Below, in pieces: positions 4,535 through 61,780 of a stretch of DNA of 64,000 nucleotides. Numbering within the stretch: the stretch's first letter is position 1; each line of letters starts with the position of its first letter. Location: contig NC_135759.1 of the NCBI RefSeq assembly GCF_052425735.1, positions 29,078,001-29,142,000 on the forward strand. Direction: 5' to 3'. Position numbers and translations under genes: made by a program. Below the pieces are notes generated by a model. The model was not told the origin of the DNA. It worked only from the letters and a program-made list of their open reading frames with translations, and ran no database searches. The DNA is from Oculina patagonica. Lineage: Eukaryota.

Positions 4535-5482
4535 TTATCTCTCTCTTTTCGTTTTGCAGAAAAACATCCGAGAGCATTCTTTCTTAATATCTCTCTTAAA
4601 AAGTGCGTAGGCGAAAGGATTTGCACCTGAATTTATAATCAGAAGCAGAGCTAAGGTATATCTAACAACTTCCTCTGGTTGCGATTTTCTACAAGACGTA
4701 AAACAAGCACACAACGAAGATAAAGACTGGCATATGTAACAGGCTAAAAATACTCCAACCATAATACTGATCAAGCGAGCTGAAGAAGCTTCTGATTTTC
4801 CTTGCATGAGGCGGCTCGGCTGGTTGAACTTCAGCTGCTTCAATAGCAGTGATGTGCGCCTCGAATGCTTGCTTGCTATCTTAATCATTTGTCGCGTTGC
4901 TATCGCTAAGAAAAAACACGGCGAGATCTGAAAAATCACCATGCTTGTAATTTGTGCGATCTTCTCATTTGACAACAAAAGTGTGGGAATTGTATCCAAA
5001 ATGAACGGCGCCAACCAAGCAGACATCAGAGTGAGACCGATCTTCGTCTTGGTCATTATGCTTGGGTACTTGAGAGGCATGACTATAGCAAAATAGCGAT
5101 CCACAGTGAAGGCAATTATGTTAGTAACAGAAACTTCCCCAAAGTAAGAGACTAAATACAGGATCACTATTGAGTGGCTACAGCCAACCATCTGGCAGGA
5201 GAAATGAGGCGGAATAAATACAACAACTAACATGAGATCTGCTGTGGCGAGCGAGAAAACAAACCAGTTTGCTTTGGTGCGAAGCCGACGGCGGGTCATG
5301 ATGAGATATATAACCAGAGCGTTGCCAAGTATTGCTATGATAGTAAGGACCAACGAGACGATCCAAAACCACATTGCTGAAGAATCTTGAAAAAATACAG
5401 TTCTTGCTAATGTAGGAACGACGCGAAGTTGATTTTCCTCGGTGATAAAATTGATTTGGCATTTATTTATGTAAATTGACAT
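4535..5482 (-). CDS. Orphan class A GPCR, intronless CDS (cluster family)
   Basis: GN in TM1, LATAD in TM2, DRY, NSGANPFAY, helix 8 FKRDIKKE. The start may instead be the ATG at 5374 (MWFWIV), which follows a pyrimidine-rich AG. Confidence 0.92.
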   Translation of the reverse strand: MSIYINKCQINFITEENQLRVVPTLARTVFFQDSSAMWFWIVSLVLTIIAILGNALVIYLIMTRRRLRTKANWFVFSLATADLMLVVVFIPPHFSCQMVGCSHSIVILYLVSYFGEVSVTNIIAFTVDRYFAIVMPLKYPSIMTKTKIGLTLMSAWLAPFILDTIPTLLLSNEKIAQITSMVIFQISPCFFLAIATRQMIKIASKHSRRTSLLLKQLKFNQPSRLMQGKSEASSARLISIMVGVFLACYICQSLSSLCACFTSCRKSQPEEVVRYTLALLLIINSGANPFAYALFKRDIKKECSRMFFCKTKRER

Positions 5483-11611: not shown

Positions 11612-12622
11612 CTACATTTTAACATATTTTAACAATGCGGCAAAACGACTACAAGTTACAGCAGCAAAAGCTGCTGCTATGCCGCCAACAAGGATACAAA
11701 CGACAACCAAAATCAGCATTACGGAAATGTAGAAGGTAAAAACGGTAAGAAACTGATAGATAGCTGACATAAGTTGTTGTGAAACATCCTTTCGAGACTT
11801 TGTAAAAAGCTTAAAATTAACTGCAAGAAAGTTAAAAAGCCAGAATAGAGAATCGCGCAAAGGTACTGATGTTTGCCGTTGGCCTGGAACCTGCACGTTT
11901 GTCAACAAGGATTCGATATTTTCTAGATTGGTATCTAAGTCCATGATATCTCTAGCCATTTTTTGCCTCTTCTTCTCTAACAGTTCTCGGTAATTACACA
12001 CTACGTTTACTTCAGCTGTTTGAACCCTGGGACGATCCCAGAATCCAATCGACTGAATGTCCTTTAAGGCTTTTTTAGTGTTAGGATCTTTTCTAAACAA
12101 AGGTTCCTGCAGAACCTTCGTTATAGCATCGATTGCTCGAAGCTTCTCATCATGGCCAAGTCTCTGATTGGGTGCGTCTCCCCATAGATTCTTCCAAACA
12201 TCAACAACATCACTTAGGACCCTTTCAGAGACATTGAAGTAGGAACACCGCCGAAGAAGCTGTAGATATCGTAAGCCGCCTATCGATTTCTCGCCGAAGT
12301 AAACCCGAGCGATTTCCGATGGTCCCGATACAGCATCGTCCCATTTAGAACTGTTGGAGACCCACCAAGCAATCTTTGTTGGATCACGGTGGTAACTGGT
12401 GATGGCTTGAGCCCACTTACAGCTGTGTGTATTATGCTTTCGAGGAGCATAGGTACAATGGCATTTTGTTCCAGACCCTACCATGGCTGTTATGAGATCG
12501 TACAACGCTTTGATCTCCTTTGCTGCAAACGACTGTAGCACATCTGATAGTAATAACAGAGCTTGCCCTACTTCAATCCAGTTTCGGTATTCATCGTTTG
12601 CAAGTCTGGATTCCAAATGCAT
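11612..12622 (-). CDS. CXorf38/DUF4559-like (HEPN-fold) protein with coiled coil and C-terminal transmembrane segment
   Basis: The N-terminus RLANDEYRNWIEVGQALLLL, then C-x-C...CKW...H...W...W...EIARVY and LLRRCSYF, matches the CXorf38 pattern as I recall it. Heptad region near residues 215-245; hydrophobic C-terminus. A polypyrimidine AG just upstream suggests a 5'UTR intron. Confidence 0.8.
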   Translation of the reverse strand: MHLESRLANDEYRNWIEVGQALLLLSDVLQSFAAKEIKALYDLITAMVGSGTKCHCTYAPRKHNTHSCKWAQAITSYHRDPTKIAWWVSNSSKWDDAVSGPSEIARVYFGEKSIGGLRYLQLLRRCSYFNVSERVLSDVVDVWKNLWGDAPNQRLGHDEKLRAIDAITKVLQEPLFRKDPNTKKALKDIQSIGFWDRPRVQTAEVNVVCNYRELLEKKRQKMARDIMDLDTNLENIESLLTNVQVPGQRQTSVPLRDSLFWLFNFLAVNFKLFTKSRKDVSQQLMSAIYQFLTVFTFYISVMLILVVVCILVGGIAAAFAAVTCSRFAALLKYVKM

Positions 12623-19053: not shown

Positions 19054-19325
19054 CTTGTATGTGGGATTTTACTGTATTTCTGGTGCGATTTACATAAACA
19101 AGGCTGTAACTTTTACACTGCTGATGTTCGAATCGTAGAATTGCGAATTGTGCGTACTCTCTGTGTAAGCATATCACAGTCTTTGATAAACTATAACGAC
19201 CCTATAACGGGAAGTCGATTAAAAGAGCGTGTTCCGTATACCCCTAACTAGAGGACCAAGGCTATCGTGGTTTACTTTTTACATTCACATTGGGAACTTA
19301 TTCTTTTATTTCTGACAACAGTGAG

Positions 19326-20309
19326 ATGAACGAAACGAATTCAAGCGTTTCATCAAGTGAAGTACTTCTACCAAGTGTGGCTTACTGGTCTCTCAAGGCC
19401 ATCATATCCATTGTGGCTGTTCTTGGAAATGGTGTAGTAATGTGGTTAATCTGTACCAGGAGACGGTTACATTGCACAGCAAACTGGTATGTTCTGTCAT
19501 TGGCTTCAGCTGACTTTTGCACTGGCTTAATTATTACACCATCGGAACTCATTTGTCTTTGGAAACCTGCCATGTGTATTTGGCCATTGGTGGTGCGCGG
19601 TTCCTTTTACAACTATCCAGTCAACGTATCGATATGTTGCCTTTGCGTGCTGACATTTGACCGTTATCTCTGTGTGTTATCTCCGTTACAATACACTAGA
19701 CGCATGACGTCAAAACTGGTAGTTGGTCTTATATCCTTGTCGTGGATATTACCAGGGATTTTGACCTTCGTCAGCCTTTTCTGGCTTAAAGCTCCAACCA
19801 ACATACAAGACACCGCTAATAAAGTTCTCACGCTTATTCAGATTTTCCTCGTGTCATTCCTGCCTTCGATCTTTTTAGTTTACGCGTACACTAGAATATT
19901 GTTTGCGGCTATGAAACAGTGGCGACGATCGGCCGAACACATTTCTCAGCTGCGATTTAATCACGTGGAAGACGAATGCGAGCGAGTTAAGTCCCAAGGA
20001 GGTCGCGAGCGTTCTTCGACAGTGAAAATACTCGGTTTTGTTATAACATTCTTTGTGTTGTGTTGGATCCCCTCTGTGTATCGTGCCATATGCGGAGCTT
20101 TCCTCCCGTGTACTGTGTCTGCACCTATCGTGCAAATCTCACGGCTTCTCATTTTACTAAACTCAGGAATGAACTTCGCCGTTTATGCGTTCTTAAAGCA
20201 GGATATTCGCAAAGAACTGTGCAAGACGTGTCGAAAGACAAGAGGTCGATCGAGGGAAAGCTTCCATCTGATGGAACGTTCGTCTAGAGCTTCTAGTAAT
20301 CAGTTATGA
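19326..20309 (+). CDS. Orphan class A GPCR, intronless CDS
   Basis: ATG 19326 (MNETNSS, N-glycosylation sites); GN, LASAD, DRY, CWIP, NSGMNFAVY, LKQDIRKEL. Confidence 0.95.
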   Translation: MNETNSSVSSSEVLLPSVAYWSLKAIISIVAVLGNGVVMWLICTRRRLHCTANWYVLSLASADFCTGLIITPSELICLWKPAMCIWPLVVRGSFYNYPVNVSICCLCVLTFDRYLCVLSPLQYTRRMTSKLVVGLISLSWILPGILTFVSLFWLKAPTNIQDTANKVLTLIQIFLVSFLPSIFLVYAYTRILFAAMKQWRRSAEHISQLRFNHVEDECERVKSQGGRERSSTVKILGFVITFFVLCWIPSVYRAICGAFLPCTVSAPIVQISRLLILLNSGMNFAVYAFLKQDIRKELCKTCRKTRGRSRESFHLMERSSRASSNQL

Positions 20310-39403: not shown

Positions 39404-40450
39404 TTACTGTTTGTTTAAACTTGTTGTATTCCTCTTTAGGGCTACCATGCAGATGCGCGTCGTAGCAAATTCCGCTCGCAAATCACTTTTGAACAAAATA
39501 AATACGATCGGATTTATTGCAGGGTTGAAAATCATAAAGAGCCACGTGATTCTAACAAATGTCAATGGTACATTGCACAGTCCGAGATACCGGCAAAATG
39601 ATGCGTACAAGGACAAAGACCAACATACAAGAAAAATTGTTATAACTGCAATAATTACTTTTACGGAAGATCTCTTCAATCGCCCTCGCTGTATCTTTTT
39701 TCGAAATTCTTTATTGCTTCTTACTTCTAGTCTTGAAAACGAACGATGACCACTGAATGAGTTTTCTTGAGAATCTACATGTACCTTAGTTTGCCTTGTA
39801 TTGTCTTTGTAGACAGCCCTTTTCTCACGCTCGCTCGGACCACTGGATGAAGTTAAAATGGATCCAATTTTATTGAAGTTTATTCCATGCAATTGAGCTA
39901 TGGTTCTTTTTGAATGCAACCTGGCTACCTGGATTATCTGTACATTTGCCACCATTAACAAAATGCAAGGAATGGCCACCATGAAAATCGTTTCCATAAT
40001 GGTAAAAATGCGAAACCATGTCGTTCTTGTTGCAGGGTCTGCATAGAGCCAAGAGAAGTGAAGACCAAAATTCACAATGGGTATTCCCCACGAAATTGCA
40101 ATCGTCTTCACGGAACCAGCCGTAGTCATACAATTTGGATACTTCAAAGGGTAAACAATGGCAATATAGCGATCAACTGTCACTGCACACAGATTAAAAA
40201 TTGATTCGTACAGAAAGAGTTCTTCGAAGGCACTTTTTAGATAAACGTCACACGTTTCTAACTTCTTACATGCAATGTATAATGGTGTGATGATCAAACC
40301 AACCAAGAGATCACTGACAGCAAGCGATAGAATAAGCCAGTTGGTGGTATTGTGAAGTTTCGCTCTTGTTGTGATCATCCAAACGACGAGTCCGTTTCCT
40401 ATTATTGCAATGATACTGATAGTCAGACTTGTACACATGTACCAAGACAT
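39404..40450 (-). CDS. Orphan class A GPCR, intronless CDS, long ICL3 and acidic TM3
   Basis: GN, LAVSD, DRY, NPAINPIVF, FKSDLRAEF; almost no N-terminal extension. Confidence 0.95.
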   Translation of the reverse strand: MSWYMCTSLTISIIAIIGNGLVVWMITTRAKLHNTTNWLILSLAVSDLLVGLIITPLYIACKKLETCDVYLKSAFEELFLYESIFNLCAVTVDRYIAIVYPLKYPNCMTTAGSVKTIAISWGIPIVNFGLHFSWLYADPATRTTWFRIFTIMETIFMVAIPCILLMVANVQIIQVARLHSKRTIAQLHGINFNKIGSILTSSSGPSEREKRAVYKDNTRQTKVHVDSQENSFSGHRSFSRLEVRSNKEFRKKIQRGRLKRSSVKVIIAVITIFLVCWSLSLYASFCRYLGLCNVPLTFVRITWLFMIFNPAINPIVFILFKSDLRAEFATTRICMVALKRNTTSLNKQ

Positions 40451-42563: not shown

Positions 42564-44251
42564 AGTGTCTTTTTTAAATGCAAAGTTTTAATTTAAAAAA
42601 CTGGGACTAAAATGCTGCTTCTAATTAATCTCTAATGGCAGAGTCAGCCATGGTGTTAGGGATGCCTTCGAAAACTATCTTGCAATCTTAGATTATTTGA
42701 AATTTCTGCATGATGAACGTTGCCGCGAGATCGTGGACAAAAACACAAAAAATAAGCCATTCGCATAATATAGTAAAAAGAGTCGAGCAACTATTTTCAT
42801 ATCGACGTTTTGTATTATTGTTGTTGGTGCTGGGAATTTATCTGTGAACACTTAAAATAGCACGTTTAATTTTCTGCTGATTTACATATACTTCAATTAC
42901 TGTCGAGGTTTTGTCTTGTTTACGTTAGCATAAAAGAAGTATGCTTGTTATGTCTGCTTAGCAAAAAGCCTAAGTAAAATAGAAAAAAATAAGCTTTTAC
43001 AATAAACAACTCTAGTGTAAAAGCAGGGTTAACTATTGCTATTGTGATGGATTTGAAATTATGAAGTGCACGTAAATAAACAAAAAAAAAAACATAAAGC
43101 AATCATACTTTTGTACCACAAATGTTCAGTCCATCTTCAATATCTTCAATTGAATACTTCTTTAGTGCCATACAATTACTACCTTTTTTTTCTGCTGTTT
43201 CTTTTGCAGGTGAGAAACATCTGCCACATCAAGCTATCACTCTAAAGCTGACATTCTTTAAAGATGGCGGCCTTTTATGTTCTTTAGGATTAATTAACTT
43301 TGATTTAAATCACTGGTAATATACAACTACTGTCAACACATAAAATAAGAGTTAGAGGTTCTACTAATCTGCCTCAACTTGAAATTTTCTCTTCTCTTTC
43401 AATTCCCGGGCTTTGTTGAATGCCCGCTAATTTGAAGCTTACAATGTTAGTGTTAGTTTGTTTTTCTCTTTGGTTTACAGTTCCTGAAAGTTTCTTGGAC
43501 AACTACCAAATTCATTTTATTTAAAATTTCAAGTAAGCGCTATACTATTTTTGCAATCTAAGATAACGATCATGTGATTTATCTTGCTGTTATATGATAA
43601 CTTCATAAAATATTTCTTAATGGACTTTTTATCTTTATTGAGCCTTTTTATTTTTTGTGGCCTACGCATCAAGAAAATATATTTCTATAAAAAGATGTTT
43701 TGGAAAAAATCGTCCAGTTTTACCTCTTTAACTGTGAAAAGAGCGTACAACAAATGCGACTAAAAATTAAAACGTATATTAAAAAAGCCTTTTCATAAAA
43801 TGACCGTTTACAAATTTATTTAATTTTTTTCCGACACATTCAAATTTGATCTATATGCCAAGCGTACACACTTCAAAAACAATAAGTAATTTCAATTTCA
43901 ATACCTTTTCTAGGGCCCTTTTTAGCTGTTCCATTATTTGAGAGGGGGCGGTCGCTGTTGATTTTATACAGGTGTCGAGAAGTGCTGATAAATATACTAA
44001 CAAATCCACCAGTACTAGTATAAATCATTAAACATTTGATCGAGATCATGGCATCGTGACGACGACTAACCGTTGCCGATGAAGAATGGACAATTTATCC
44101 TTCTTTATACCGAAAAGGCAAGGGTTCGATTTACTCGTTGTATAGAATTTTCTTTGTTAAAAAGGGACGTTCAGTTGAGATGGTAACTGACTAAAGTAAG
44201 TGGATTGCAAATATATCAAGGAAACGTAATTTTTTTTTATGAAAAGCTGTG

Positions 44252-45250
44252 ATGATGAAAAACGAGACCTTTACCAACGCTGAATCAAACAACAACAGTT
44301 CAAGTTCGTTGCCACTCTACTACTTCGTCCTCGCACCGCTTATAGCGTTCGTTGCCGTGCTTGGAAATGGAATAGTGATCTACCTCATTTGCACAAGAAG
44401 GCGACTCCATGTAATGACTAACTACTTTGTAGTTTCTCTTGCTGCGGCAGATTTCTTGGTAGGCCTGTTTCTTCCTAGTTTTATCATCGCTTGTAATTTT
44501 TGGTCGGACTGTGAAATCACTATTTACAACATGTTCTTTAACCTGTTCACCTTAGTCTCAATAGCGAATTTATTTGTCATGACAGTCGACCGATATATAT
44601 CCATAGTTCATCCATTGCGTTATCAGTCGTATGCCACTTCCAAGCGACTAGTTGGTGCTATGTTAGCATCCTGGATCATTCCAGCCCTGCTATCGTTCTC
44701 TCCTCTCTTCTGGAAATATTCAAGCTCAGAGAAAGTCAAGAGTTCGGCAACAAAGGTTCACGCATTTATTGTTATAACTGTATTCGAACTTGTACCCACG
44801 GTTGTCATGCCAGCAATGTACATGCATATTTTTCGCACCGCAAGAAAACACGCACGGCAGGTCGCAGTGCAAAGAACACAACTTGAGTTCAACAGCACAC
44901 ACAGTGAAGTTTTCAGTGAAAAGAATACGCTTGAAATGACAGCACCAACAAGCAAAAGAATTTCTTATGCCTCACAGCAAAAGAAAGGGGAAAGGACGAC
45001 CGATGGATCAAGCATTGCCGTGTTGGGAGCTGTTATCGGTCTTTTTGTTTTGTGTTGGTCGTTTGATACCGTTATTTCGTTTTGCAGTAAATTAGAATTA
45101 TGCGTTATAAATGATGGCCTTTTTAGGGTATCCGACCTGTTGATTTTTGTGAATTCTGCTATTAATCCACTCGTTTATGCCTTTTTGAAGAAGGACATTA
45201 AACGAGAACTTAATGTTGTTTGCCGCTGTACCTTAAGAGAAAATGAGTGA
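44252..45250 (+). CDS. Orphan class A GPCR, intronless CDS
   Basis: ATG 44252 (MMKNETF); GN, LAAAD, DRY, NSAINPLVY, LKKDIKREL. Confidence 0.95.
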   Translation: MMKNETFTNAESNNNSSSSLPLYYFVLAPLIAFVAVLGNGIVIYLICTRRRLHVMTNYFVVSLAAADFLVGLFLPSFIIACNFWSDCEITIYNMFFNLFTLVSIANLFVMTVDRYISIVHPLRYQSYATSKRLVGAMLASWIIPALLSFSPLFWKYSSSEKVKSSATKVHAFIVITVFELVPTVVMPAMYMHIFRTARKHARQVAVQRTQLEFNSTHSEVFSEKNTLEMTAPTSKRISYASQQKKGERTTDGSSIAVLGAVIGLFVLCWSFDTVISFCSKLELCVINDGLFRVSDLLIFVNSAINPLVYAFLKKDIKRELNVVCRCTLRENE

Positions 45251-46580
45251 AAAGCGATACTTTGTTATTCACGAAGGCTTCCCGTTAATTATCTTCACTG
45301 CATTCAGTGATTCCAGTTGTTCCGACACTTGTCATGATGAAAATTTTCATAAAAACACATCTAAATTACCTTTATTTATTATTATTATTATTATTTTTTT
45401 AAATTGCCTATGTTTTTTTATTTATTATATTATTTAAATCTTAAAAATAAAGCAGATCTGAGTTTGAATATGATCACAAAAGTAATCGGTATTACCAATT
45501 CAACAAAAACAATGACAATTTGATTGTTTTGACAAAAAAGGTAATTCAAGAGTGGAAAACAACGGAAAAGAAATGGACATTTTGTTTAAAAGAATATATC
45601 GCTTGCGTTTATCGTAACTTCACGGCCAATTTTTAACTTTGCAGTTAATGAATAAAAGAAATGTCGCATCTGACTAAGTGTTATGTCAATTACTTAGCTG
45701 TAACTTGAAATTTCCGTATTCATAACCACGCAATTAGTAAGTGTATAAAGAAAACAGAAATGCATTAAAAAACTTGAAACTTTCGGAACCTGCGCCTGAG
45801 CACATTTTAACGCCCTAAGGGATTAATACTGTTTGCAGACCTATGCCTGAATGGTCTATAAATTATTAATTATATGCCATTCAAAGATGAGGGCTCATGC
45901 AGTTGCGTATGCCACGTTTTAGAATTGACATTTCTTCTGTTGGCTCCAATTTTGTCAGTAACTAATGCTTCAAATTAAAATTTTTTCCTAGCTAGCTATA
46001 GTCGAAATTGAATAACAGCGATGCCTAACTTATCCTCTGGCATCGTTGCAAAAATTCCACCATTTGACTCCATTTTTGTGTGTTACAATACGCACAATTT
46101 TTAACAAAAAACATATGATAAAAGAGATTAGTCCCTTCTGCAACTTTACCCGGTAAATATAGCACGAGATTAACTTAAGGTTTGAATATTATTCAAGTTG
46201 TACATGAAATTTCCATGACCTTTGTCAACAGCATTTAATAACTTGGAAGTTTTGTATAGTTCATTACTTTTTTATTATAGCCATCTGCAAAATTAGAAGG
46301 ATGAGCATTATCTTGAAAGTTTTAGCTGTCAATCTCAGACACTAATTAACATCAGTTAGGCAATTTTCATAACATTGCATTTCTTTTTTCATCCCTTTTC
46401 CGTATGTTTACTTATACCGAGAAATAATTCATTGATATAGGTAAACTTGCACATGTTTGTTTCTTCTAAATTATGTTTTAATTAAACACTTTGATCGATT
46501 ATTTAAGACGTCATATAGTAATCAGTGAGATCTAATCAGCACCGCTTCGAAAAAGAAGCAGAGAAAACTTCTTCAGTACA

Positions 46581-49516
46581 TTACAGACACGAGTTCTTGA
46601 TAATCACATCTGTGCATATTTTGCAGCTGCATGGCTCATCAACACTGGCTTTGCAATTACAAAATCTCTTCTGGTACGTTGCTTCTCTTTTGTAACCACG
46701 ACCACAGCACATAAAGGTGCAATCATCTTCCTTGTGAGTGTTTCTTTGGCACCGGCGGCCGCGTGTTCCCGAAATGTTGTACTCATCTTGGCGGTAACAG
46801 TAAGAGGGGGACTGATTGAGGTAAGCCAGGGAAGACTTTTTTGGTTTTTTGCCATTAGGTCGGCCATTGTATTTCCCAACGGCTCGTAGATAAAACGACC
46901 TTTTTCGTTCTCGCCTTTTGGCAATGACCCTGGTAGCTTTATAATATTTTGCTTTAAGAATCCGGCTGATCTTTTGGAGTGATGGTAAAGTTAAGTGACA
47001 CGACTTTACTCTGCCTGATTTTCCCACCGTGCATTTGACCACTCTATTTTCATTTAATGCCTGATGAAAGTGAAAAGAAATCATTCAAAAATGAATGAAA
47101 TGAACTCGTCTTCCAATATAGAGAGAATTTAACAAGTTAAATATGTATTTTCTCGAATTTATTAAACTTTTTATTCCTGTACCAAAAGAGGGAAATTATT
47201 CGAGGAAAACCAATTAATCAAGGGAGCGATTATTTCAAATATTTCAAGTCCCGGCTTATTTGAACACGCACAGAGTGCTTATACTGATTGCCAATCAGCT
47301 TTTAGAGCATTAAAGTCTGAGTCTGCGCACAAAGACTAGAAGTCAGTGTATCGCGGACTTTTCTATTGGAATTTTCTATTTCTCAATTGCCCATAATACA
47401 TTTTGTTTCCCCCCCCCCCCCCCCCAAAAAAATTTTGCATAAACTATTGTTTTCAAATTCTCTTGGGAGGACTGCATATTTCCAAAACAATAGTTTATGC
47501 AAAATTTGGGGGGCAAACAAAGTGCATTATGGGCAATTGGCCATGGAAAATAGAGAATAGGCCGAGACTTTGCTAGAGCCTGCGTTCTTGTTGCTGACCA
47601 AAAAAGCGGGCTCTGGGAACAAGATTGTTGAAACCTAAGAAAAAGTGACTGATCTTACTGGCCATGATATACTCTAAACCAGTTATCTTCTCAATCCATT
47701 TTATTCATTACTCCTTACTGTTGCTTCGATAAAATTATATGAGACGTGCAGATGAATTATGAGTTGACCGTTTCAATGCCAACAAAATAAAAAGAAACGC
47801 AACCAGGAACCTGAAAGTTCTAACAACATCGAGAATATGATCTGCATACGCAAAACCCTTTCTTCAGTATCCCCTGCTTTCTTTTCACAGTCCGTCGCAT
47901 CATATTACAAGAGTGAGAAAAGTTTCTAGATTATTAGTTGCATTATTATACTTACCTCAAGTCCAACTCTAACATTTTGTTTCATTATTGTGTTCATCTC
48001 ACTGTTGTTGCCTCTCCCACTCAACATAAACCGCTCGGCAGAGTAAGTTCCAAATCGCACGTTTTCACTGCACCCCCGCCATTTCCAGGATTGACCATTC
48101 AAAGGGCGTTTGACTCCCTCGCAGCTGCATTCCGTTACATCTTTTGCTGTGCAGGCCTTCGCCACGCTGAAAGCTATTGCTGCTGACAGTAATGCGGTGG
48201 TAAAAGCTGCTTCTTTGGTTCCATCTGTAGAGGGAGATTATAATAATAATATATGTTTTTAGAAGGCTTTCCCTGGAATTAAAACCTGAAGAATCACTCA
48301 TAGGCATTAGTTAGACTCAACCTTAATTAAAGCTGTCATGGTTCTATTTTAATTTAAGTTTACCGATACGGTTACGATGCTGCCTACAAAGATAACCTAT
48401 ATTCTCCTCTTTTATTATAGCCCTTCCGTCTACCTAAATTTAACAAGAAGGAACCCTTTTGGGAAAACAGTAGTAAATTTAAGGATAATAGTTTCACAAA
48501 CTTAGACTCGAAACAGGTAGATAGGACAAAATACCTCGTAATAAAAGACTATGTAACGTCTACAATTGCAACAAAATTGAAGGATGAAACTTACTTTTTG
48601 TTAGATTGCCAAAGCTATTCTCCTATACGAGACATATTCTTCTCTAAAATAGAACCTAAAACCCCATGCTACGATTATTATCACATGAAACCTTATTATC
48701 ACTTCGTATGAATTCCACTGACTGCTTTATAAACATTCAGCTACCCAATTTTATTTATATCGGCGTGCTTTGAATTGAGAGACAATCTCTTTACAATGTT
48801 CACCCCTTGAATGGTTAAAAATGGAGGGGAGATTTGGGTGTCGGGTGCCGAGTGTGGGGGTCTCTGACGATTATTGTAATTCTTTTTATTTTATTTTACT
48901 CTGATGAGATTTGACGCCAGGCAGGCTGCCGGAGCAGGTCCGCTCCCTTTCTGGCCGGTGGCTTGAGTCTTATTGTTTGGAAGCCTTGTCTTCTGTTTTA
49001 CTAGTTATCTTAGTTAATTGGGGGAAATAACAAGTAAAGCTGGCTTTTGCAATAGGGCTTCTGTATTCTGATTTACTTGGTTGGGTCCTTATTTTCTTTT
49101 TCGAAGTCGATGACGTCATCATGCAGTCCTCTTCTCCTTTTTTTTTTTCTTTTTTTTTTTCTTTTTTTTTTCCTATCTCTTTTTTCCTTTTCCTTTTTAT
49201 AAAGCTTGTTATTGTTGCCTCAACAAAGTTAAAACACAATATAACAAGGGTTACATGTTTCTATACCGCGTGTTTTCCTTTTTTTCTTTTTGGTTTCTAA
49301 TTAACTCTCCACTACCAGTTGGGCGTCTGTTGTATTATTACGATATGAATAATTAATGAGTTTGAAAAAAGAAATGCTCTGCGTTAGTCATAACTAGCCG
49401 CAGCAGCAGCGAAAAAGCTGTAAAAGATGCAGATGCAGCAGCAAAAATAACAACACGAACAAGAACAAGAACAACATTCGACGACAATGACGACGACGAT
49501 GGCAGCGGCGAAGAGC

Positions 49517-49548
<32 letters not shown>

Positions 49549-52035
49549 AAGAAGAAGAAAGGTATTCAAGGAAATAAACGGGACCGCATTCATCAAGTAA
49601 AATACTTAGCCCAGAAGCAAAAATAACGATGAATGCGGACCTAACCGGGTTTGGCACGGGTTTCAAAATGCTAGATAAACACAACGATAAATCTGGTGAA
49701 GTTATCATTTGACAAAGGAACAGCAACATTTACCAGTAATCAGTAAGTAACCACTATAGTGCACGTTTTTTTTCTCGTATCGTTAAATGTAGTATACTCT
49801 TTTGAAAGATAGCAACAGAGCTTTTATTTGAGGAATTTCGAAATCCGTCACGGTAACCCTGCTGATAGGTCCACCTCAGTTTTACGGCCGTCTTACTGCC
49901 ATATATATACTTTTTTCCTCACTGCGAAATTAGGCAAGCGATGTGTTTGCAACGAATAATGATACAGAACTGAAGTTTTTCTTCAAAACAAGAACAAATT
50001 TTCAGTAAACAACCACGTCATTAATAAATACTTAAAGTGAACTCAGACCGAACCGACCGAACCACTTTAAATTAAAAAGGTCGTTCCACGTACGCATGCA
50101 AGACTGCACGAAGCTTTGAAACTTCTAAAGGTGAACATTGGCCGGATTATATAAAGCATTGTTGATTTTACTGAGTAATCTTAGACAGCCAAACTCTTTT
50201 CTTTGTACCCGGACCCCAAGCCAATTATATTTGTCAAACCAAGCCCTCCCGCACAGCCCAAAAAGCACCTTAATAACCTTTCAGTTGCCTAAAATAACAG
50301 ATGTTGGAGTTAACAATAACAAGATACTGTTGTTTTGAAGACAATTTTGATACACAGTGATATGGCCTACCTGGTGCTCGGCGTAGAAGGCTCTTTTCGT
50401 CAAGCAAAGTGCAGTTCCATCTATTCCACTGAAATTCTCGTTCGCATTCTTGTAATCCTTTCTCAATTCCTTTCTTTATTGCAGTCTGAAGTCCAGGGAC
50501 TCTAAGACAAAGCTTTCTTTGACTTGGAGAGAGTCCTGGCGCTTTCTGGCACCACAGCTTAGGGCGAGATGACCTCTTTGCTGTGCAACTGTGAATAGGA
50601 AAAATTAAAGAACATGCGCGCTAGTTAGTAACATATTCGTGATTAAAGAAGCAAGTGGGTAGCTTAACCAACGCTCTCCGCACTCTGTTGGCCTAGGTAT
50701 CTCCTATCTTCAATTATTAAGAACCGCCAACCTGAAATTTCCTCATCACAATGAAGACACTTTCATCCGTCATCTTATTTTTGCTCCGACTAAGAGTTAA
50801 ATCAACTAACTTTCGATACTTTCGAAATGTCAGCTTTTCAAACTCATTACACGTTTTTCCATAGTTAATTTACCTTTATTAACTCATTTCTAGCTTACAA
50901 TTAGATAATTTTAATATCAGGGTTAGATTCAGTAGGAAAATACGTTTAAAAATGCATTCACATCTAAAGCACAAATTTAACCCCCAGAATGCAAGACTTT
51001 TTCAAAAGTCTAAAAACATGATTATATTTCTGTCGACGGAATTCACTTGAATGCGATATCCTGCTGTCCGAGTGCGCACAGACTTTGGGTCTCACGCTGG
51101 TTTGTTTATGACGAACCTCGACGATTAATATTTCGAGCTACTCTTGTAAACATTATCATAATGGAGTATGGACTAAATATATCTTTATTAATTACCGGAG
51201 TTGTAAATGGACATTGCCTTCTCTAGGCCAATACGTTGACCTGTTAATAATGTAATTAATGAGTCGACGAAATCTTATGTCTCGATATGCTTAGGTCAAG
51301 CATATATAGATTTTTAAACAAATTATCACTATTTGATTATCTTCCCCTTTCGTACGAATTTTGAAACAGCGTTGACAAGTTCGACCGAATTAATTTGTCA
51401 TTCCATCATACGCCTCACGCTCACACTACCTATCTCGCTTTTTGCGTTTCATTTTGTCATGAAAGGAGGCACTTTGCAAACAGCTGTTTTTTATTAAAAC
51501 TCATCTTACTGGAGACAAAGGCACGACGAAGGCCTTTCGGAAGATTAGAGGCTAAGTAAGTAAATCATTCGTATGTTTATTTGTCTGTAATGCTAAGTTG
51601 CTTCAGACATGATGCCTAAAATGCCATTTTCTAAAATTCATCAAGAAAGCAAAGGGTAACAAGTCTCATAAACGATGACAAGTTGGATCTCAACAGTGGC
51701 ACGCTGGGAAAGACAAGCATTTCTTGATGTTCAATACTAGATTTTGCTACACAGTTTTAATCAGCTTCGATTAGTGGTGAAGAGAATAGTTATTAAAGTT
51801 GACTTAATTTTGCGAAATCCGGAAAGACCGTGCTCTCCTTGCAGTTCAATTGGCCACTAAAAAATGTCTTGAGTGAATTTCTAATTAAAATCTTAATGGG
51901 TGTAAATCGTTTTAAGTCTTCACGTCATTCTGCAAATGAAATACAGCTTTCACTCAGCTACCACTCCAGTCAAAGTTGAACTACTCACCTCAAAAACAAA
52001 ATTACAAAAGAGATCACTTCTGTGAACAACTTCAT
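46581..52035 (-). CDS. Divergent Wnt-family protein (337 aa, 4 exons)
   Basis: Exons 52035-51989, 50588-50371, 48224-47956 and 47060-46581; all introns GT-AG, phases 2/1/0, frame open throughout. Signal peptide MKLFTEVISFVILFLSCTA. Wnt motifs ECEREFQWNRWNC, GTKEAAF, WKWRGCSENV, YLNQSPSYC, GTRGRRC, MCCGRGY. Subfamily not assignable by eye. Confidence 0.93.
47371..47560. mobile_element. Palindromic MITE in Wnt intron 3
   Basis: Long inverted arms caattgcccataat..aaattttgcataaactattgtttt / aaaacaatagtttatgcaaaattt..attatgggcaattg. Confidence 0.8.
48440..48790 (+). mobile_element. Degenerate non-LTR retrotransposon ORF2 C-terminal zinc-knuckle fragment (RTEX-like) in Wnt intron 2
   Basis: Translates with a stop and a frameshift as RLETGR*DKIPRNKRLCNVYNCNKIE/DETYFLLDCQSYSPIRDIF. 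Confidence 0.7.
49400..49560. repeat. Compound (CAG)/(CAA)/(CGA) low-complexity microsatellite
   Basis: Direct reading. Confidence 0.85.
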
Positions 52036-54215
52036 CGTGGCTCTACAAGCGCGTAGTTTTGTCACCTTTTCAACGCAGTCGTTTTCAAGACCGAGGGACA
52101 CAGATCGTATATCGTAACACTGATCCGCTACTGCAGTGAGTATCACTAACCTGTTTTGGGAAACAAGAGTCTTTTACACAGCTTGAGAAACAGAAAATTT
52201 GAATTCCATGGCTTTTTAAAGAATGTTTCGAATTCCGTGTCGTATTTTTCTCATGGCGGAATAAGTAGAACGACTTACGATTCTAACAATACAACCTTGT
52301 CTAAAGCAGTCTTTTCCCTCGGAATTAACTGTCAAGTTGGCTGCACTTGGGCCATGGCGCCATTGCTTTACACCTGATCAGCGTTTGTCAGTTCCCAGAC
52401 AGAGCTCAAAGTTAAGCAGATATAATGTCTTTTTTCGGATTACACGGCACGCCGAAGAAAGCTCGATTTTACCCAGACAAATCCTTATTTAATTATATTT
52501 CTACAAAGGCAGTTCATTTGTTAAATTGACCTCAGTAACCATACCTTAGACACGGCACTCAAGACGATAATCTTGTATGCACGGATAACACCTTAAAACA
52601 TCTTGTCCACGAAGTTTTCTTTTCCTGTTGCTGGCCGTGACTGTACATTTTTTTTTTAGTATTTTGGTTCGCTTCGCTGTCATTGTAATTGATCATTGTC
52701 ATTAATTGTCATTTCCATTGTAATTAGTTTTAGCTTGTTACAAGAGAGGATATATCCTCTCTTGCTTGTTACAATTTCCTAAAATAAAATGATACTTTTC
52801 TCCAGACTGTTAAACTAGAAAAAACACCCTTTCTTTGATTAATATAGCAGTAAGTTGTATTGCTCCCGCCCCCTTCCCTCTCATACCTCATACTGTTGGA
52901 CCCCTTTGGGAAAAATCACGAGGAAACAAGTATATAAGTAACGCCAAAGTCTTTTGAAGCATAATAAAAATCTCACTACATAAGCAAAAAAAATTGCAAA
53001 ACATTTCTTTTTTACTTTTAGTTTGGGGATGTGGAGTGTGCAATATTTAGTCAAGGGTGGGAATAACCCTCGCTAAGTAATGGAGATTATGTCTGTGTTT
53101 CGTTTGGAAACACGATAAACCATAGGATAATGAATAACGATTACAAAAACATTGACTACGTGATGTTGACTCAAAATTTTTATCATGCGGATAATCCCTT
53201 ATTTCCTTAATAGGACTTAATATATAAGGTCTGAACAAGATGTAATGTCTAGAATTTAACAAAGCGATAATGTTTATATAATGGTTTTATTTCTCCTTAA
53301 TAAATCGAACGTGATGACAATTCATAATTAAAAAAACGAAAGATCAGGGATACTCAGCCTTTCATCCCTTTTATTTGGAGATCCACGTGAGAACCTGACC
53401 TTTCTGTTGCTGCTGTTGTTATTGGTGGTGTTTTTACAATCTTTATTGTTGTTGGTACGCACTTGCAGTTAAATCCAATTACACGATCGCGGCTCCTCTG
53501 TAACTGGATGGCTGACATTCAGGAAGTAAAAAACGGAGATAGACTTTTTTGAACTAACTTAGAACTTTAACCAGAAGTAGGCGAGTGGTAAAGAACTAAA
53601 TCTGGACCTAAGTTTTCAATGGACGCATTCTAAGACTCCTTCTGTCTGTGGCGTCAATGCATTCCTTGCCTAAGCATATATCAGATCAGAATACCAGACA
53701 AATAAACAGTTTAGTTTGTAATCAACTTCTACAGGTCTTGATAATATCCAGGTCTAATATTGTTTTCTTTGAACAAAGACCCGTATTCTTGTTTTAGTGG
53801 AAACGTATCACAACATACCATTTTGCGGAGTTTCCTAGAGCCGCTATTCTTGCCCTCACATGCGCAATTAAGAGTAATGCACTGGGTTCCTAGTAAGCTC
53901 AAACAATGTCACTCGTGTTTTTTCACACTAGTAGGCAGATTTTTTTGATGGTAGGAAGTAGTTGTAATAAAATACCAGTTATTTTGACTAACACTATTTA
54001 TTCAGGTCCAAGTTCTCCCTGCTTCAAGTTGTCATCAAGAAAATAGAAGTTTTTATCTACATGTCTAATACTCAGACTACTGACAATTTTAAATAAATAG
54101 TTCTTAAAATATACTCTACTATGTTAAACTTTTTGTTGCTAACTTAGGTTTCATGGTTTATTCAGCTTATCTATCAGCTGTACGCACGGCTAACATTGAA
54201 CAAAGGTAAAAATGC

Positions 54216-54664: not shown

Positions 54665-55636
54665 CTATGGCCGCGAGCGCCCGCTCAGCCTGGTAAGACT
54701 AACTCCTCTAACAGTAGCTAATACCTCGTTTTGGCATTTAAACAACCTTCTCAGTTCCGCCCGAAAATCCATCTTGAGCAGAGCGTACACAATAAAATTA
54801 ACAGCACAGTTTACATGAACCATAAGCAAGGAGGCGATGCGCACATTAGCAGATGCAGAACACAGCCTAAAATTTGAACAAAAAGATACGTATATGCTGA
54901 TAAAATAGCAAGCTACAAACAGTGAAATAACTGCCCCTAGAATTTTGGCAGATACTCGTGCCCGTTCGTTTCTGTTTTTCATACGATGAGTAGTGTTAAA
55001 TGATAGCTGTGCTCTTTGAGATGCGACGTGTCGAGAATGCTTACCTATTATTGCCAGAATTCTTACGTAAATTACCGCGAGTAGAAGGCAAGAAAATATG
55101 CCAAACCATAAATCTATTAAGATCCGGTAATAGATATCTACTTTGGCCCTTAAATTCTTATCATATAGCCATAACAGACGAATTGATGAAGCGAGCAGTG
55201 AGGTAATCCACGGTAATGATATTATGATTATTGTTCGCTTGGTTGTCATTCGGTCAATGTATCTCAAAGGGCATACGATGGCATTATAGCGGTCGTAAGC
55301 CATTGCCCACAAGTTTAAAGTAGATGCAAATAGCAAAAAGTTATAGAAGACAAGTTGCGGGCGCCAGTCGCACCTTACCCAGTAGGAACAGGCTAATCCA
55401 GTTGGTGTGACCAACAACCCGACACAGAAGTCTGATATGGCGAGAGATATGATGAACCAGTTGCAAGTCACCTGGAGACTCTTCCTTGCCGTAATTAGGA
55501 AAATAACAAATCCGTTGCCTAAGACGGTGATTACGGAGATGATTATTCTTAAAGACCAGTACCATGTTATCTGAGGTTCTAGTGAATAATGCTTTCGCAT
55601 TGAATGATCGATCTTTACCTCTGTTGTATTATTCAT
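54665..55636 (-). CDS. Orphan class A GPCR, intronless CDS
   Basis: MNNTT; GN, LAISD, DRY, NCAVNFIVY, LKMDFRAEL. Confidence 0.95.
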   Translation of the reverse strand: MNNTTEVKIDHSMRKHYSLEPQITWYWSLRIIISVITVLGNGFVIFLITARKSLQVTCNWFIISLAISDFCVGLLVTPTGLACSYWVRCDWRPQLVFYNFLLFASTLNLWAMAYDRYNAIVCPLRYIDRMTTKRTIIIISLPWITSLLASSIRLLWLYDKNLRAKVDIYYRILIDLWFGIFSCLLLAVIYVRILAIIGKHSRHVASQRAQLSFNTTHRMKNRNERARVSAKILGAVISLFVACYFISIYVSFCSNFRLCSASANVRIASLLMVHVNCAVNFIVYALLKMDFRAELRRLFKCQNEVLATVRGVSLTRLSGRSRP

Positions 55637-60772: not shown

Positions 60773-61780
60773 ATGGATCGCATACGTGAGAGAGATGCGT
60801 ATTGGTATTGGATTGTAGTAGTCTTTATCGGAGTGACAACAGTTTGTGGAAACACGGTGGTTATATATTTAATCTTGACGCGGAGATGTCTTCACATCAC
60901 AGCCAACTGGTTTATACTCTCACTGTCGTTCGCAGATTTACTCGTTGGACTGGTGGTGATACCAACATACATTATCCATACGTTCTGGGTACAATTAAAC
61001 CTTCATGCACTGTTGAAATTCTACAACCTTATTTTATATGTGTCAGTTGGCAACTTGTGTGTTATGACTGGAGATAGATATCTTGCCATCACAAGACCAT
61101 TGAATTACGTCTCACTTATGACTCGGTCGAAGGTCCTGATAATGATATTTACTGCCTGGTCAATACCTGCAGGTATTTCACTTTTATCTCTGCTGTGGCA
61201 AACGTCGGACACGAACGGAAAAACGGACACAGTACATAGAGTATACGGTGGCTTAACTGTGGTGTGCTTCGAAGTTATTCCGTGCTTAATGATGCTTTTA
61301 GTGTACTTTCACTTATATTTAATAACACGAGCTCATTCTCGTAGGATCGCTGCACAGGAAAGTGTGAAGGAACGTCACAGCGGAGAAAAATTTACGAAAA
61401 GAAGAAGACAAAGAAATAGGGAGAGGTCCAATCTGAAAGTGTTCGCATCAGTTGCGCTGTTGTTCGTCTTTTGCTGGCTTCTTTCAGCCTATCGTGGATT
61501 TTGCCACGTGTTCAGCCTGTGCTCTGTGACCATAGAATTTGTACAAGTATCCAGAATCCTCATTTTCTTAAATTCTGCGGTTAATGTTGTAGTGTATTCC
61601 TTTCTGAAGAGGGATATAAGGACAGAGTTGAAACGTTTATTGAGGTGCCGAACACGTCAAGAATCGCTTGACTTTAGTCTCGTGCGTATACAGGAGTCAA
61701 CAGTGGCGAATCGTTCGCTGGAGGTTGAGACAGAAGCACCAAAGAACGGTCAACAAGAACCGGGACCTAGTGTGAATTAG
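60773..61780 (+). CDS. Orphan class A GPCR, intronless CDS
   Basis: GN, LSFAD, DRY, NSAVNVVVY, LKRDIRTEL. Confidence 0.95.
   Translation: MDRIRERDAYWYWIVVVFIGVTTVCGNTVVIYLILTRRCLHITANWFILSLSFADLLVGLVVIPTYIIHTFWVQLNLHALLKFYNLILYVSVGNLCVMTGDRYLAITRPLNYVSLMTRSKVLIMIFTAWSIPAGISLLSLLWQTSDTNGKTDTVHRVYGGLTVVCFEVIPCLMMLLVYFHLYLITRAHSRRIAAQESVKERHSGEKFTKRRRQRNRERSNLKVFASVALLFVFCWLLSAYRGFCHVFSLCSVTIEFVQVSRILIFLNSAVNVVVYSFLKRDIRTELKRLLRCRTRQESLDFSLVRIQESTVANRSLEVETEAPKNGQQEPGPSVN

Follow-up and report, generated by a model that had tools for sequence, protein, structure and literature searches.

Can a Wnt gene be maintained once both of the hairpin tips with which Wnts contact Frizzled have changed? 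The question is raised by a gene on the minus strand of a 64,000-nucleotide stretch of the Oculina patagonica genome (RefSeq assembly GCF_052425735.1, contig NC_135759.1, positions 29,078,001 to 29,142,000; hereafter the window, meaning the whole stretch analyzed, numbered from its first letter). The original prediction, made from the DNA letters alone, had described this gene as an intact Wnt in which the thumb (hairpin 2) and the index finger (hairpin 3) are both degenerate. Wnts are classically described as touching Frizzled at two sites, the lipidated thumb and the hydrophobic fingertip, and both are almost invariant; the fingertip Phe, Trp and vicinal Cys-Cys reportedly make the site-2 contact. 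The serine that Porcupine acylates stands at the tip of the disulfide-stabilized hairpin 2 (bioRxiv 10.1101/2021.07.19.452875; PMC10112924), and all mammalian Wnts carry a serine at this tip, which enters the Porcupine tunnel (bioRxiv 10.1101/2021.07.19.452875). According to the passage of PMC10112924 that cites Janda 2012, the lipidated thumb and the finger jointly grip the Frizzled cysteine-rich domain (CRD). As judged from alignments and trees, the gene is a divergent Wnt7-derived paralogue, so far known only from stony corals, whose clade dropped both contacts yet has stayed under purifying selection and whose product probably acts without a lipid and without the canonical two-site grip.

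The gene has four exons, with GT..AG at every intron border (Table 1), which join to 1014 nucleotides including the stop codon and encode 337 amino acids with 22 Cys. RNA contigs from runs X1, X5 and X6, which belong to three different studies and were placed on 46400-52200, omit exactly the predicted introns 47060-47955, 48225-50370 and 50589-51988; the splice joint 47059/47955 is present in contigs of X1 and X6, and the joints 48224/50371 and 50588/51989 in contigs of all three runs. On the exon 1 side the contigs span 51989-52200 and further, with the 5′ untranslated region extending past 52200 and an in-frame stop upstream of the start codon at about 52147, and on the exon 4 side they span 46400-47059, with the 3′ untranslated region continuing below 46400. 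DNA run X14 is collinear with the genome across the locus. The spliced product is 100% identical over its 337 amino acids to P0310, the RefSeq entry 'protein Wnt-7b-like [Oculina patagonica]', so that the four-exon frame originally proposed equals the RefSeq model, and the gene is already in the public annotation under an automatic 'Wnt-7a/7b-like' name. The conserved Wnt core is likewise borne out, with Pfam wnt (PF00110) matching exons 2, 3 and 4 separately (43.9, 69.8 and 102 bits, cutoff 20.3). Canonical Wnt queries match only these three exons in the window, and Wnt7 proteins align to them exon by exon. The N-terminus (MKLFTEVISFVILFLSC) is hydrophobic and is modeled as a helix at residues 2-18 followed by a low-confidence segment, and resembles a signal peptide. 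The gene is therefore real, expressed and, as described below, conserved among stony corals.

To place the gene within the Wnt family, we carried out an exhaustive HMMER scan with exon 4, which returned five close representative clusters (58-80% identity) and then, after a gap, ordinary Wnts whose identity does not exceed 39%. A word-based search together with cluster look-ups named as members of this clade Oculina patagonica, Orbicella faveolata, Pocillopora meandrina and Desmophyllum pertusum, which belong to the 'robust' scleractinian lineage, as well as Porites harrisoni, two Montipora species and five Acropora species, which belong to the 'complex' lineage. Every named member is a stony coral (Scleractinia), and at least seven genera are represented; the sea-anemone matches are canonical Wnt7 only, at about 35% identity. 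In an IQ-TREE analysis of 51 rows with the posterior mean site frequency (PMSF) model, the clade groups with anthozoan Wnt7 with a support of 99/98, and the tree of the N-terminal half gives the same union at 100/99. The stem of the clade is 1.7 substitutions per site long, and its inner branches (0.04-0.28) are similar to those of canonical coral Wnt7. An origin from Wnt16 or from Wnt2 was rejected by the approximately unbiased (AU) test (p = 0.021 and p = 0.0036, respectively). The C-terminal half could be assigned to neither of the two alternative 3′ exon sets of Wnt7, as its tree, in which the stem measures 2.5 substitutions per site, gave no resolution.

The border between exons 3 and 4 coincides exactly with the point at which the isoforms of canonical anthozoan Wnt7 diverge. 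Alternative 3′ exons of Wnt7 have been described in Nematostella and Edwardsiella (PMC3909931). In the isoform pairs P0182/P0183 (Oculina), P0191/P0196 (Acropora), P0193/P0203 (Montipora) and P0165/P0162 (Nematostella) the N-terminal halves are identical and the proteins differ completely after 'AGRQ' or 'VGRE', and the alternative 3′ exon system is therefore also present in coral RefSeq models. Corals retain, in addition to the paralogue described here, a canonical Wnt7 with intact CxCHGxSxxC and FxWCC, which in Oculina lies on another chromosome-scale contig (34.0 Mb) than the paralogue (46.5 Mb). Canonical anthozoan Wnt7 (Nematostella Wnt7A/7B; Oculina P0182/P0183) is the nearest relative in the trees, at about 31-35% identity, and both are basic, presumably secreted proteins with a Wnt fold and an intron site before the thumb-encoding exon. 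In canonical Wnt7, CxCHGxSxxC...TCW and CKFxWCC are kept, there are 25-26 Cys, and the 3′ exons are alternative. The coral paralogue, in contrast, has a single 3′ exon; the inner thumb disulfide, the His and the Trp are lost from it, as are Phe, Trp and the vicinal Cys-Cys at the fingertip, and Cys322 is new.

In the thumb of the Oculina protein (VVKCTVGKSGRVKSCH, C188...C199), HMMER alignments to human WNT7A, WNT3 and WNT3A place C188 on the first thumb Cys and C199 on the last, which, by the UniProt disulfide list of WNT3A, form the outer disulfide pair. Where canonical Wnts have CxCHGxSGxCxxKTCW with its acyl-acceptor Ser, the protein reads KCTVGKSGRVKSCH. In these alignments the GKSG falls on GxSG, the His and the Ser-Cys are deleted and the second Cys is Val, so that the inner Cys pair no longer exists and the loop has three residues fewer; a His stands in place of the Trp that follows the last Cys. 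All orthologues have the same shortened thumb and retain only its outer disulfide. These losses are the ones first listed for Oculina, together with the remark that the serine of GxSG remains. That serine is indeed present in Oculina as Ser193 (47016-47018), at the thumb tip and aligned with the acylated serine, but it is not conserved: across 17 clade sequences position 193 is Thr in seven, Ser in five, Arg in four (Acropora and Montipora) and Ala in one, a relative with 87% identity to Oculina. The entropy of the position, 1.78, is among the highest in the thumb, where Gly191, Gly194, Lys197 and both Cys are invariant. Since the position accepts Arg and Ala, it is not an essential acylation site for the clade, which strengthens the case for loss of the acyl site, and from this variation we conclude that the clade cannot depend on O-acylation as a conserved feature. 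Another Wnt without an acyl acceptor may be P0006 (692 amino acids), a tandem double-Wnt protein that has CRCHGFKGC in both thumbs, where Lys occupies the position of the acylated serine, and that keeps the vicinal Cys-Cys of the finger (RYHWCC).

The index finger of the Oculina protein retains C312, C314, C324 and C327. The motif CxCKFxWCCxVxCxxC is absent, and the replacement of Phe, Trp and the vicinal Cys-Cys by polar or acidic residues, originally noted for Oculina, extends to all orthologues, in which these residues are variable. The fingertip (315-321) has an entropy of 1.49 against a mean of 0.73 for the mature protein, and both hairpin tips are among the most variable stretches. Beside the fingertip, a new Cys322 (46629-46631) is invariant in the clade. 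Of the framework of about 24 Cys in Wnts, 20 canonical residues are kept; the four missing ones are the inner pair of the thumb and the vicinal pair of the finger. With Cys322 gained, the Cys count is odd in most orthologues. In the Montipora orthologues (P0155, P0357, P0359 and P0360) the equivalent of Cys327 is Arg (CKVRTDVV) and that of Cys322 is kept; this breaks a canonical finger disulfide and gives a hint that the disulfide pairing of the finger may have been rearranged.

An AlphaFold2 model, calculated with a 70-sequence alignment, has a mean predicted local distance difference test score (pLDDT) of 88.1 and a predicted template modeling score (pTM) of 0.82, and displays the two-domain Wnt fold with regular beta-hairpins at 185-202 (thumb) and 301-336 (finger). 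The top Foldseek matches are WNT3, WNT7A, WNT3A and XWnt8 (E 1e-24 to 1e-15); the template modeling (TM) score is 0.81-0.87 against WNT3 (6ahy) and 0.68-0.87 over the set 8tzo, 6ahy and 4f0a, with WNT7A (8tzo) also matched, at about 0.8. Both exon 4 and the full-length protein match solved Wnt chains by sequence, human WNT7A being the best (E = 2.8e-50), and a search of the ESM Atlas gave nothing past the 'Wnt' identity. The modeled thumb and finger hairpins lie at the same places as in the WNT7A, WNT3 and XWnt8 structures. In the solved Wnt complexes the thumb-tip serine carries the palmitoleate (site 1) and the finger is the other grip arm, whereas in the coral clade these residues are missing or unconstrained. 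As the scaffolds are conserved and predicted to be regular, the hairpins are remodeled at their tips rather than collapsed, and 'remodeled' describes them better than the earlier 'degenerate'. The canonical Frizzled-CRD contact motifs are both absent from every orthologue. This combination was not found in any of 186 other Wnts of at least 300 amino acids, 177 of which keep both motifs and eight of which are without one.

The pairwise ratio of nonsynonymous to synonymous substitution rates (dN/dS), determined with the Nei-Gojobori method (NG86) for 15 pairs from six species other than Acropora and Porites, is 0.11-0.22, far from the value near 1 that would have spoken against a maintained gene; the maximum-likelihood pairwise calculation had unstable dS in four pairs. 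The closest pair, Oculina and Orbicella, has a dS of 0.59 and an omega of 0.17. Among the sequencing runs, 11 coding variants were listed, of which eight are synonymous and three are conservative Ser/Thr exchanges. The low dN/dS and the mostly synonymous variants indicate a constrained gene and not a pseudogene. In addition, the gene lies within an array of G protein-coupled receptor (GPCR) genes, and receptor genes of this type also surround its orthologues in Orbicella (L001) and Porites (L003), which supports orthology across both coral lineages.

These observations can be combined in a tentative scheme. A duplication of anthozoan Wnt7 would have been followed by very fast change on the stem and by purifying selection since. 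The clade as a whole would be independent of Porcupine-mediated palmitoleoylation and unable to grip the Frizzled CRD in the canonical two-site way, and its product would be a lipid-free secreted Wnt-fold protein, as is WntD. With the two tips out of use, this protein would rely on other conserved surfaces to engage another partner or to modulate other Wnts; the candidates are the helical core at the N-terminus, the scaffolds of the hairpins, the CTDV(I/V)IxNxC tail at the C-terminus and Cys322. Drosophila WntD, which is unlipidated and secreted without Porcupine or Wntless (PMC2427328) and is the only analyzed Wnt without lipid (PMC10112924), is therefore a functional precedent for a lipid-free Wnt. 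Like the coral clade it is a natural family member without a conserved acyl acceptor, but the two are not orthologous, since WntD gives only a weak match (E = 8.9e-8) in the N-terminal part and the clade groups with Wnt7. By analogy with WntD, a lipid-free, non-canonical mode of action is plausible for the coral protein. With the acyl position unconstrained, the hairpin recognized by Porcupine altered and the fingertip contact residues absent, the canonical two-site grip is most likely missing, and we give a probability of about 0.6 to the gene being a divergent Wnt7 paralogue whose product is lipid-independent and lacks this grip.

Several points weigh against this interpretation. The Oculina protein and 11 of the 16 other sequences carry Ser or Thr at the thumb tip, within a conserved G-x-x-G turn, so that acylation could still occur in those species, and the modeled hairpins are well formed, which would allow some contact with Frizzled. 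The C-terminal half, which holds both hairpins, is uninformative with its stem of 2.5, and the placement with Wnt7 comes mostly from the N-terminal half; moreover, the trees took in few non-Wnt7 cnidarian Wnts and the stem of the clade is long. Finally, dS is saturated in the distant pairs that enter the dN/dS range.

The first of these points leads to the main alternative, that of a Wnt that is still acylated and binds Frizzled, in which the thumb-tip Ser or Thr would be palmitoleoylated in most species and provide the site-1 binding, and the changed finger would only retune the specificity for Frizzled or the co-receptor. The Ser or Thr found in 12 of the 17 sequences, the conservation of the G-x-x-G tip, the outer disulfide and the KSC stretch, and the good confidence with which the thumb hairpin is predicted are all consistent with it. 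We nevertheless consider it unlikely, because the position, among the most variable of the thumb, is Arg in Acropora and Montipora and Ala in a close relative of Oculina, and because the inner disulfide and the His are lost from a loop that is three residues shorter, whereas the mammalian serine sits on a disulfide-stabilized hairpin 2 in the Porcupine tunnel (bioRxiv 10.1101/2021.07.19.452875). A retuned but otherwise ordinary ligand would also have to account for a loss of both motifs that is unmatched in the 186 other Wnts.

The other possibility to be considered is the secreted antagonist or decoy of the original prediction, which would tie up LRP5/6, heparan sulfate or other Wnts while leaving Frizzled unactivated. 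It draws on the loss of both CRD-contact tips from an otherwise conserved protein, on WntD as an inhibitory, lipid-free precedent (PMC2427328), and on the very high net charge of the protein, with 59-67 Lys and Arg against 23-28 Asp and Glu and an isoelectric point (pI) of 9.8-10.05 in the clade, compared with 9.0-9.5 in canonical coral Wnt7. This cationic charge would fit binding to matrix or proteoglycans. Wnts are generally basic, however, canonical ones included, and the basic linker, in which KRRERKRS and KKPKK are present as first quoted, is the least conserved region of the mature protein (entropy 1.20 against the mean of 0.73), even if it stays basic throughout the clade. We therefore regard a decoy role, as deduced from sequence, as rather doubtful. 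Overall, what stands of the original prediction is an intact, spliced, expressed and maintained gene from which both contact motifs are gone, and its functional proposals (LRP5/6, heparan sulfate, antagonism, another receptor) stay at the level of suggestions from sequence.

A transcribed pseudogene, left by a duplicate in decay or without function, might explain the very long stem and the loss of near-invariant Wnt motifs, but it is contradicted by the dN/dS values, by an open frame intact in at least seven genera of both scleractinian lineages, by 20 canonical Cys kept beside a new invariant one, by within-clade branch lengths resembling those of canonical coral Wnt7, and by conserved synteny and expression in three studies. 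Given the alternative 3′ exons of canonical anthozoan Wnt7 (PMC3909931), an annotation artefact could be imagined in which other exons or isoforms restore CKCHGxSG and FxWCC, but this is extremely improbable, as the RNA contigs of three studies join just these four exons, as does the identical RefSeq model; tblastn searches with the product of the gene and with 11 canonical Wnts found no further Wnt-like exon in the window, and orthologous transcripts from other corals share the same ends.

Table 1 Positions in the window of the exons and hairpins of the Oculina Wnt7-derived gene and of the neighboring receptor genes
Feature	Position	Strand	Basis or content
Exon 1	51989..52035	-	Start codon and signal-peptide-like N-terminus MKLFTEVISFVILFL
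Exon 2	50371..50588	-	N-terminal Wnt core (CQKAPGLSPSQRKLC ... ECEREFQWNRWNC); Pfam wnt E = 2.9e-11
Exon 3	47956..48224	-	Helical core (GTKEAAF ... WKWRGCSEN ... QNVRVGLE); Pfam wnt E = 3.7e-19
Exon 4	46581..47060	-	Thumb, basic linker, C-terminal domain with index finger, stop; Pfam wnt E = 5.6e-29
Thumb (hairpin 2), C188-C199, CTVGKSGRVKSC	46998..47033	-	HMMER to WNT7A, WNT3 and WNT3A; orthologue alignment; AlphaFold2 strands 185-190 and 196-202
Basic linker, residues 223-258 (KRRERKRS ... KKPKK)	46821..46928	-	Entropy and pI
Index finger (hairpin 3), C312-C327, CNCKASVDEPCSCKIC	46614..46661	-	Orthologue alignment; AlphaFold2 strands 301-315 and 323-336
Intronless rhodopsin-type GPCR gene, neighbor	44249..45250	+	Pfam 7tm_1 E = 1.2e-39; separate from the Wnt gene
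Intronless rhodopsin-type GPCR gene, neighbor on the opposite flank	54665..55636	-	Pfam 7tm_1 E = 1.3e-25

The array around the Wnt gene comprises at least nine intronless GPCR genes of the rhodopsin family (Pfam 7tm_1), which lie on both strands at 1291-2028, 4535-5482, 19290-20309, 27898-28908, 31169-32164, 39404-40450, 44249-45250, 54665-55636 and 60773-61780. Among them, on the minus strand at 11612-12622, is an open reading frame of 336 amino acids with a match to Pfam DUF4559 (E = 2.6e-11). Intron 3 of the Wnt gene contains, at 47384-47539, a nested palindromic element resembling a miniature inverted-repeat transposable element (MITE), with arms of 32 nucleotides (91% complementary) and 24 nucleotides (100%). 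Relative to its flanks, the word depth of this element is raised several hundredfold in the DNA run and about 40-fold in the RNA runs, and it is therefore a high-copy repeat of the Oculina genome. In intron 2, a long CAA/CAG/GAC triplet run at 49420-49560, over which RNA contigs are absent, is adjoined by poly-T/CT tracts at 49126-49200.

In the literature that was searched we found no description of the altered hairpins, of a coral Wnt without the acyl site, or of a coral-restricted divergent Wnt7 clade. The origin of the gene as a Wnt7-derived paralogue of stony corals, its existing 'Wnt-7b-like' annotation and the new invariant finger Cys had not been part of the original prediction. Published expression data mention genes of this name in several corals: 'Wnt-7a' or 'Wnt-7a/7b' transcripts are reported to be strongly enriched in aboral tissue of Pocillopora (PMC13581030) and in the bases of Acropora colonies (PMC4320547), and two 'Wnt-7b-like' genes are listed in Acropora gastrulation data (PMC12360431), and in each case the label may cover either paralogue. 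As a result of the automatic 'Wnt-7a/7b-like' names, expression studies may merge two very different ligands under one name.

A more far-reaching proposal, which we regard as speculative and on balance improbable, is that stony corals evolved, at about the origin of the group, a lipid-free Wnt7-derived ligand that dispensed with the Frizzled CRD grip in favor of a new partner, possibly as a Cys322-linked dimer and perhaps in the aboral, skeleton-forming tissue. If this were true, the clade would be a natural experiment on what the Wnt fold can do without binding the Frizzled CRD, and it would represent a second lipid-independent Wnt lineage after WntD. As the known members all come from reef-building corals and coral 'Wnt7' transcripts are reported from aboral or basal tissue, the gene would also be a candidate for a role in coral patterning or calcification.

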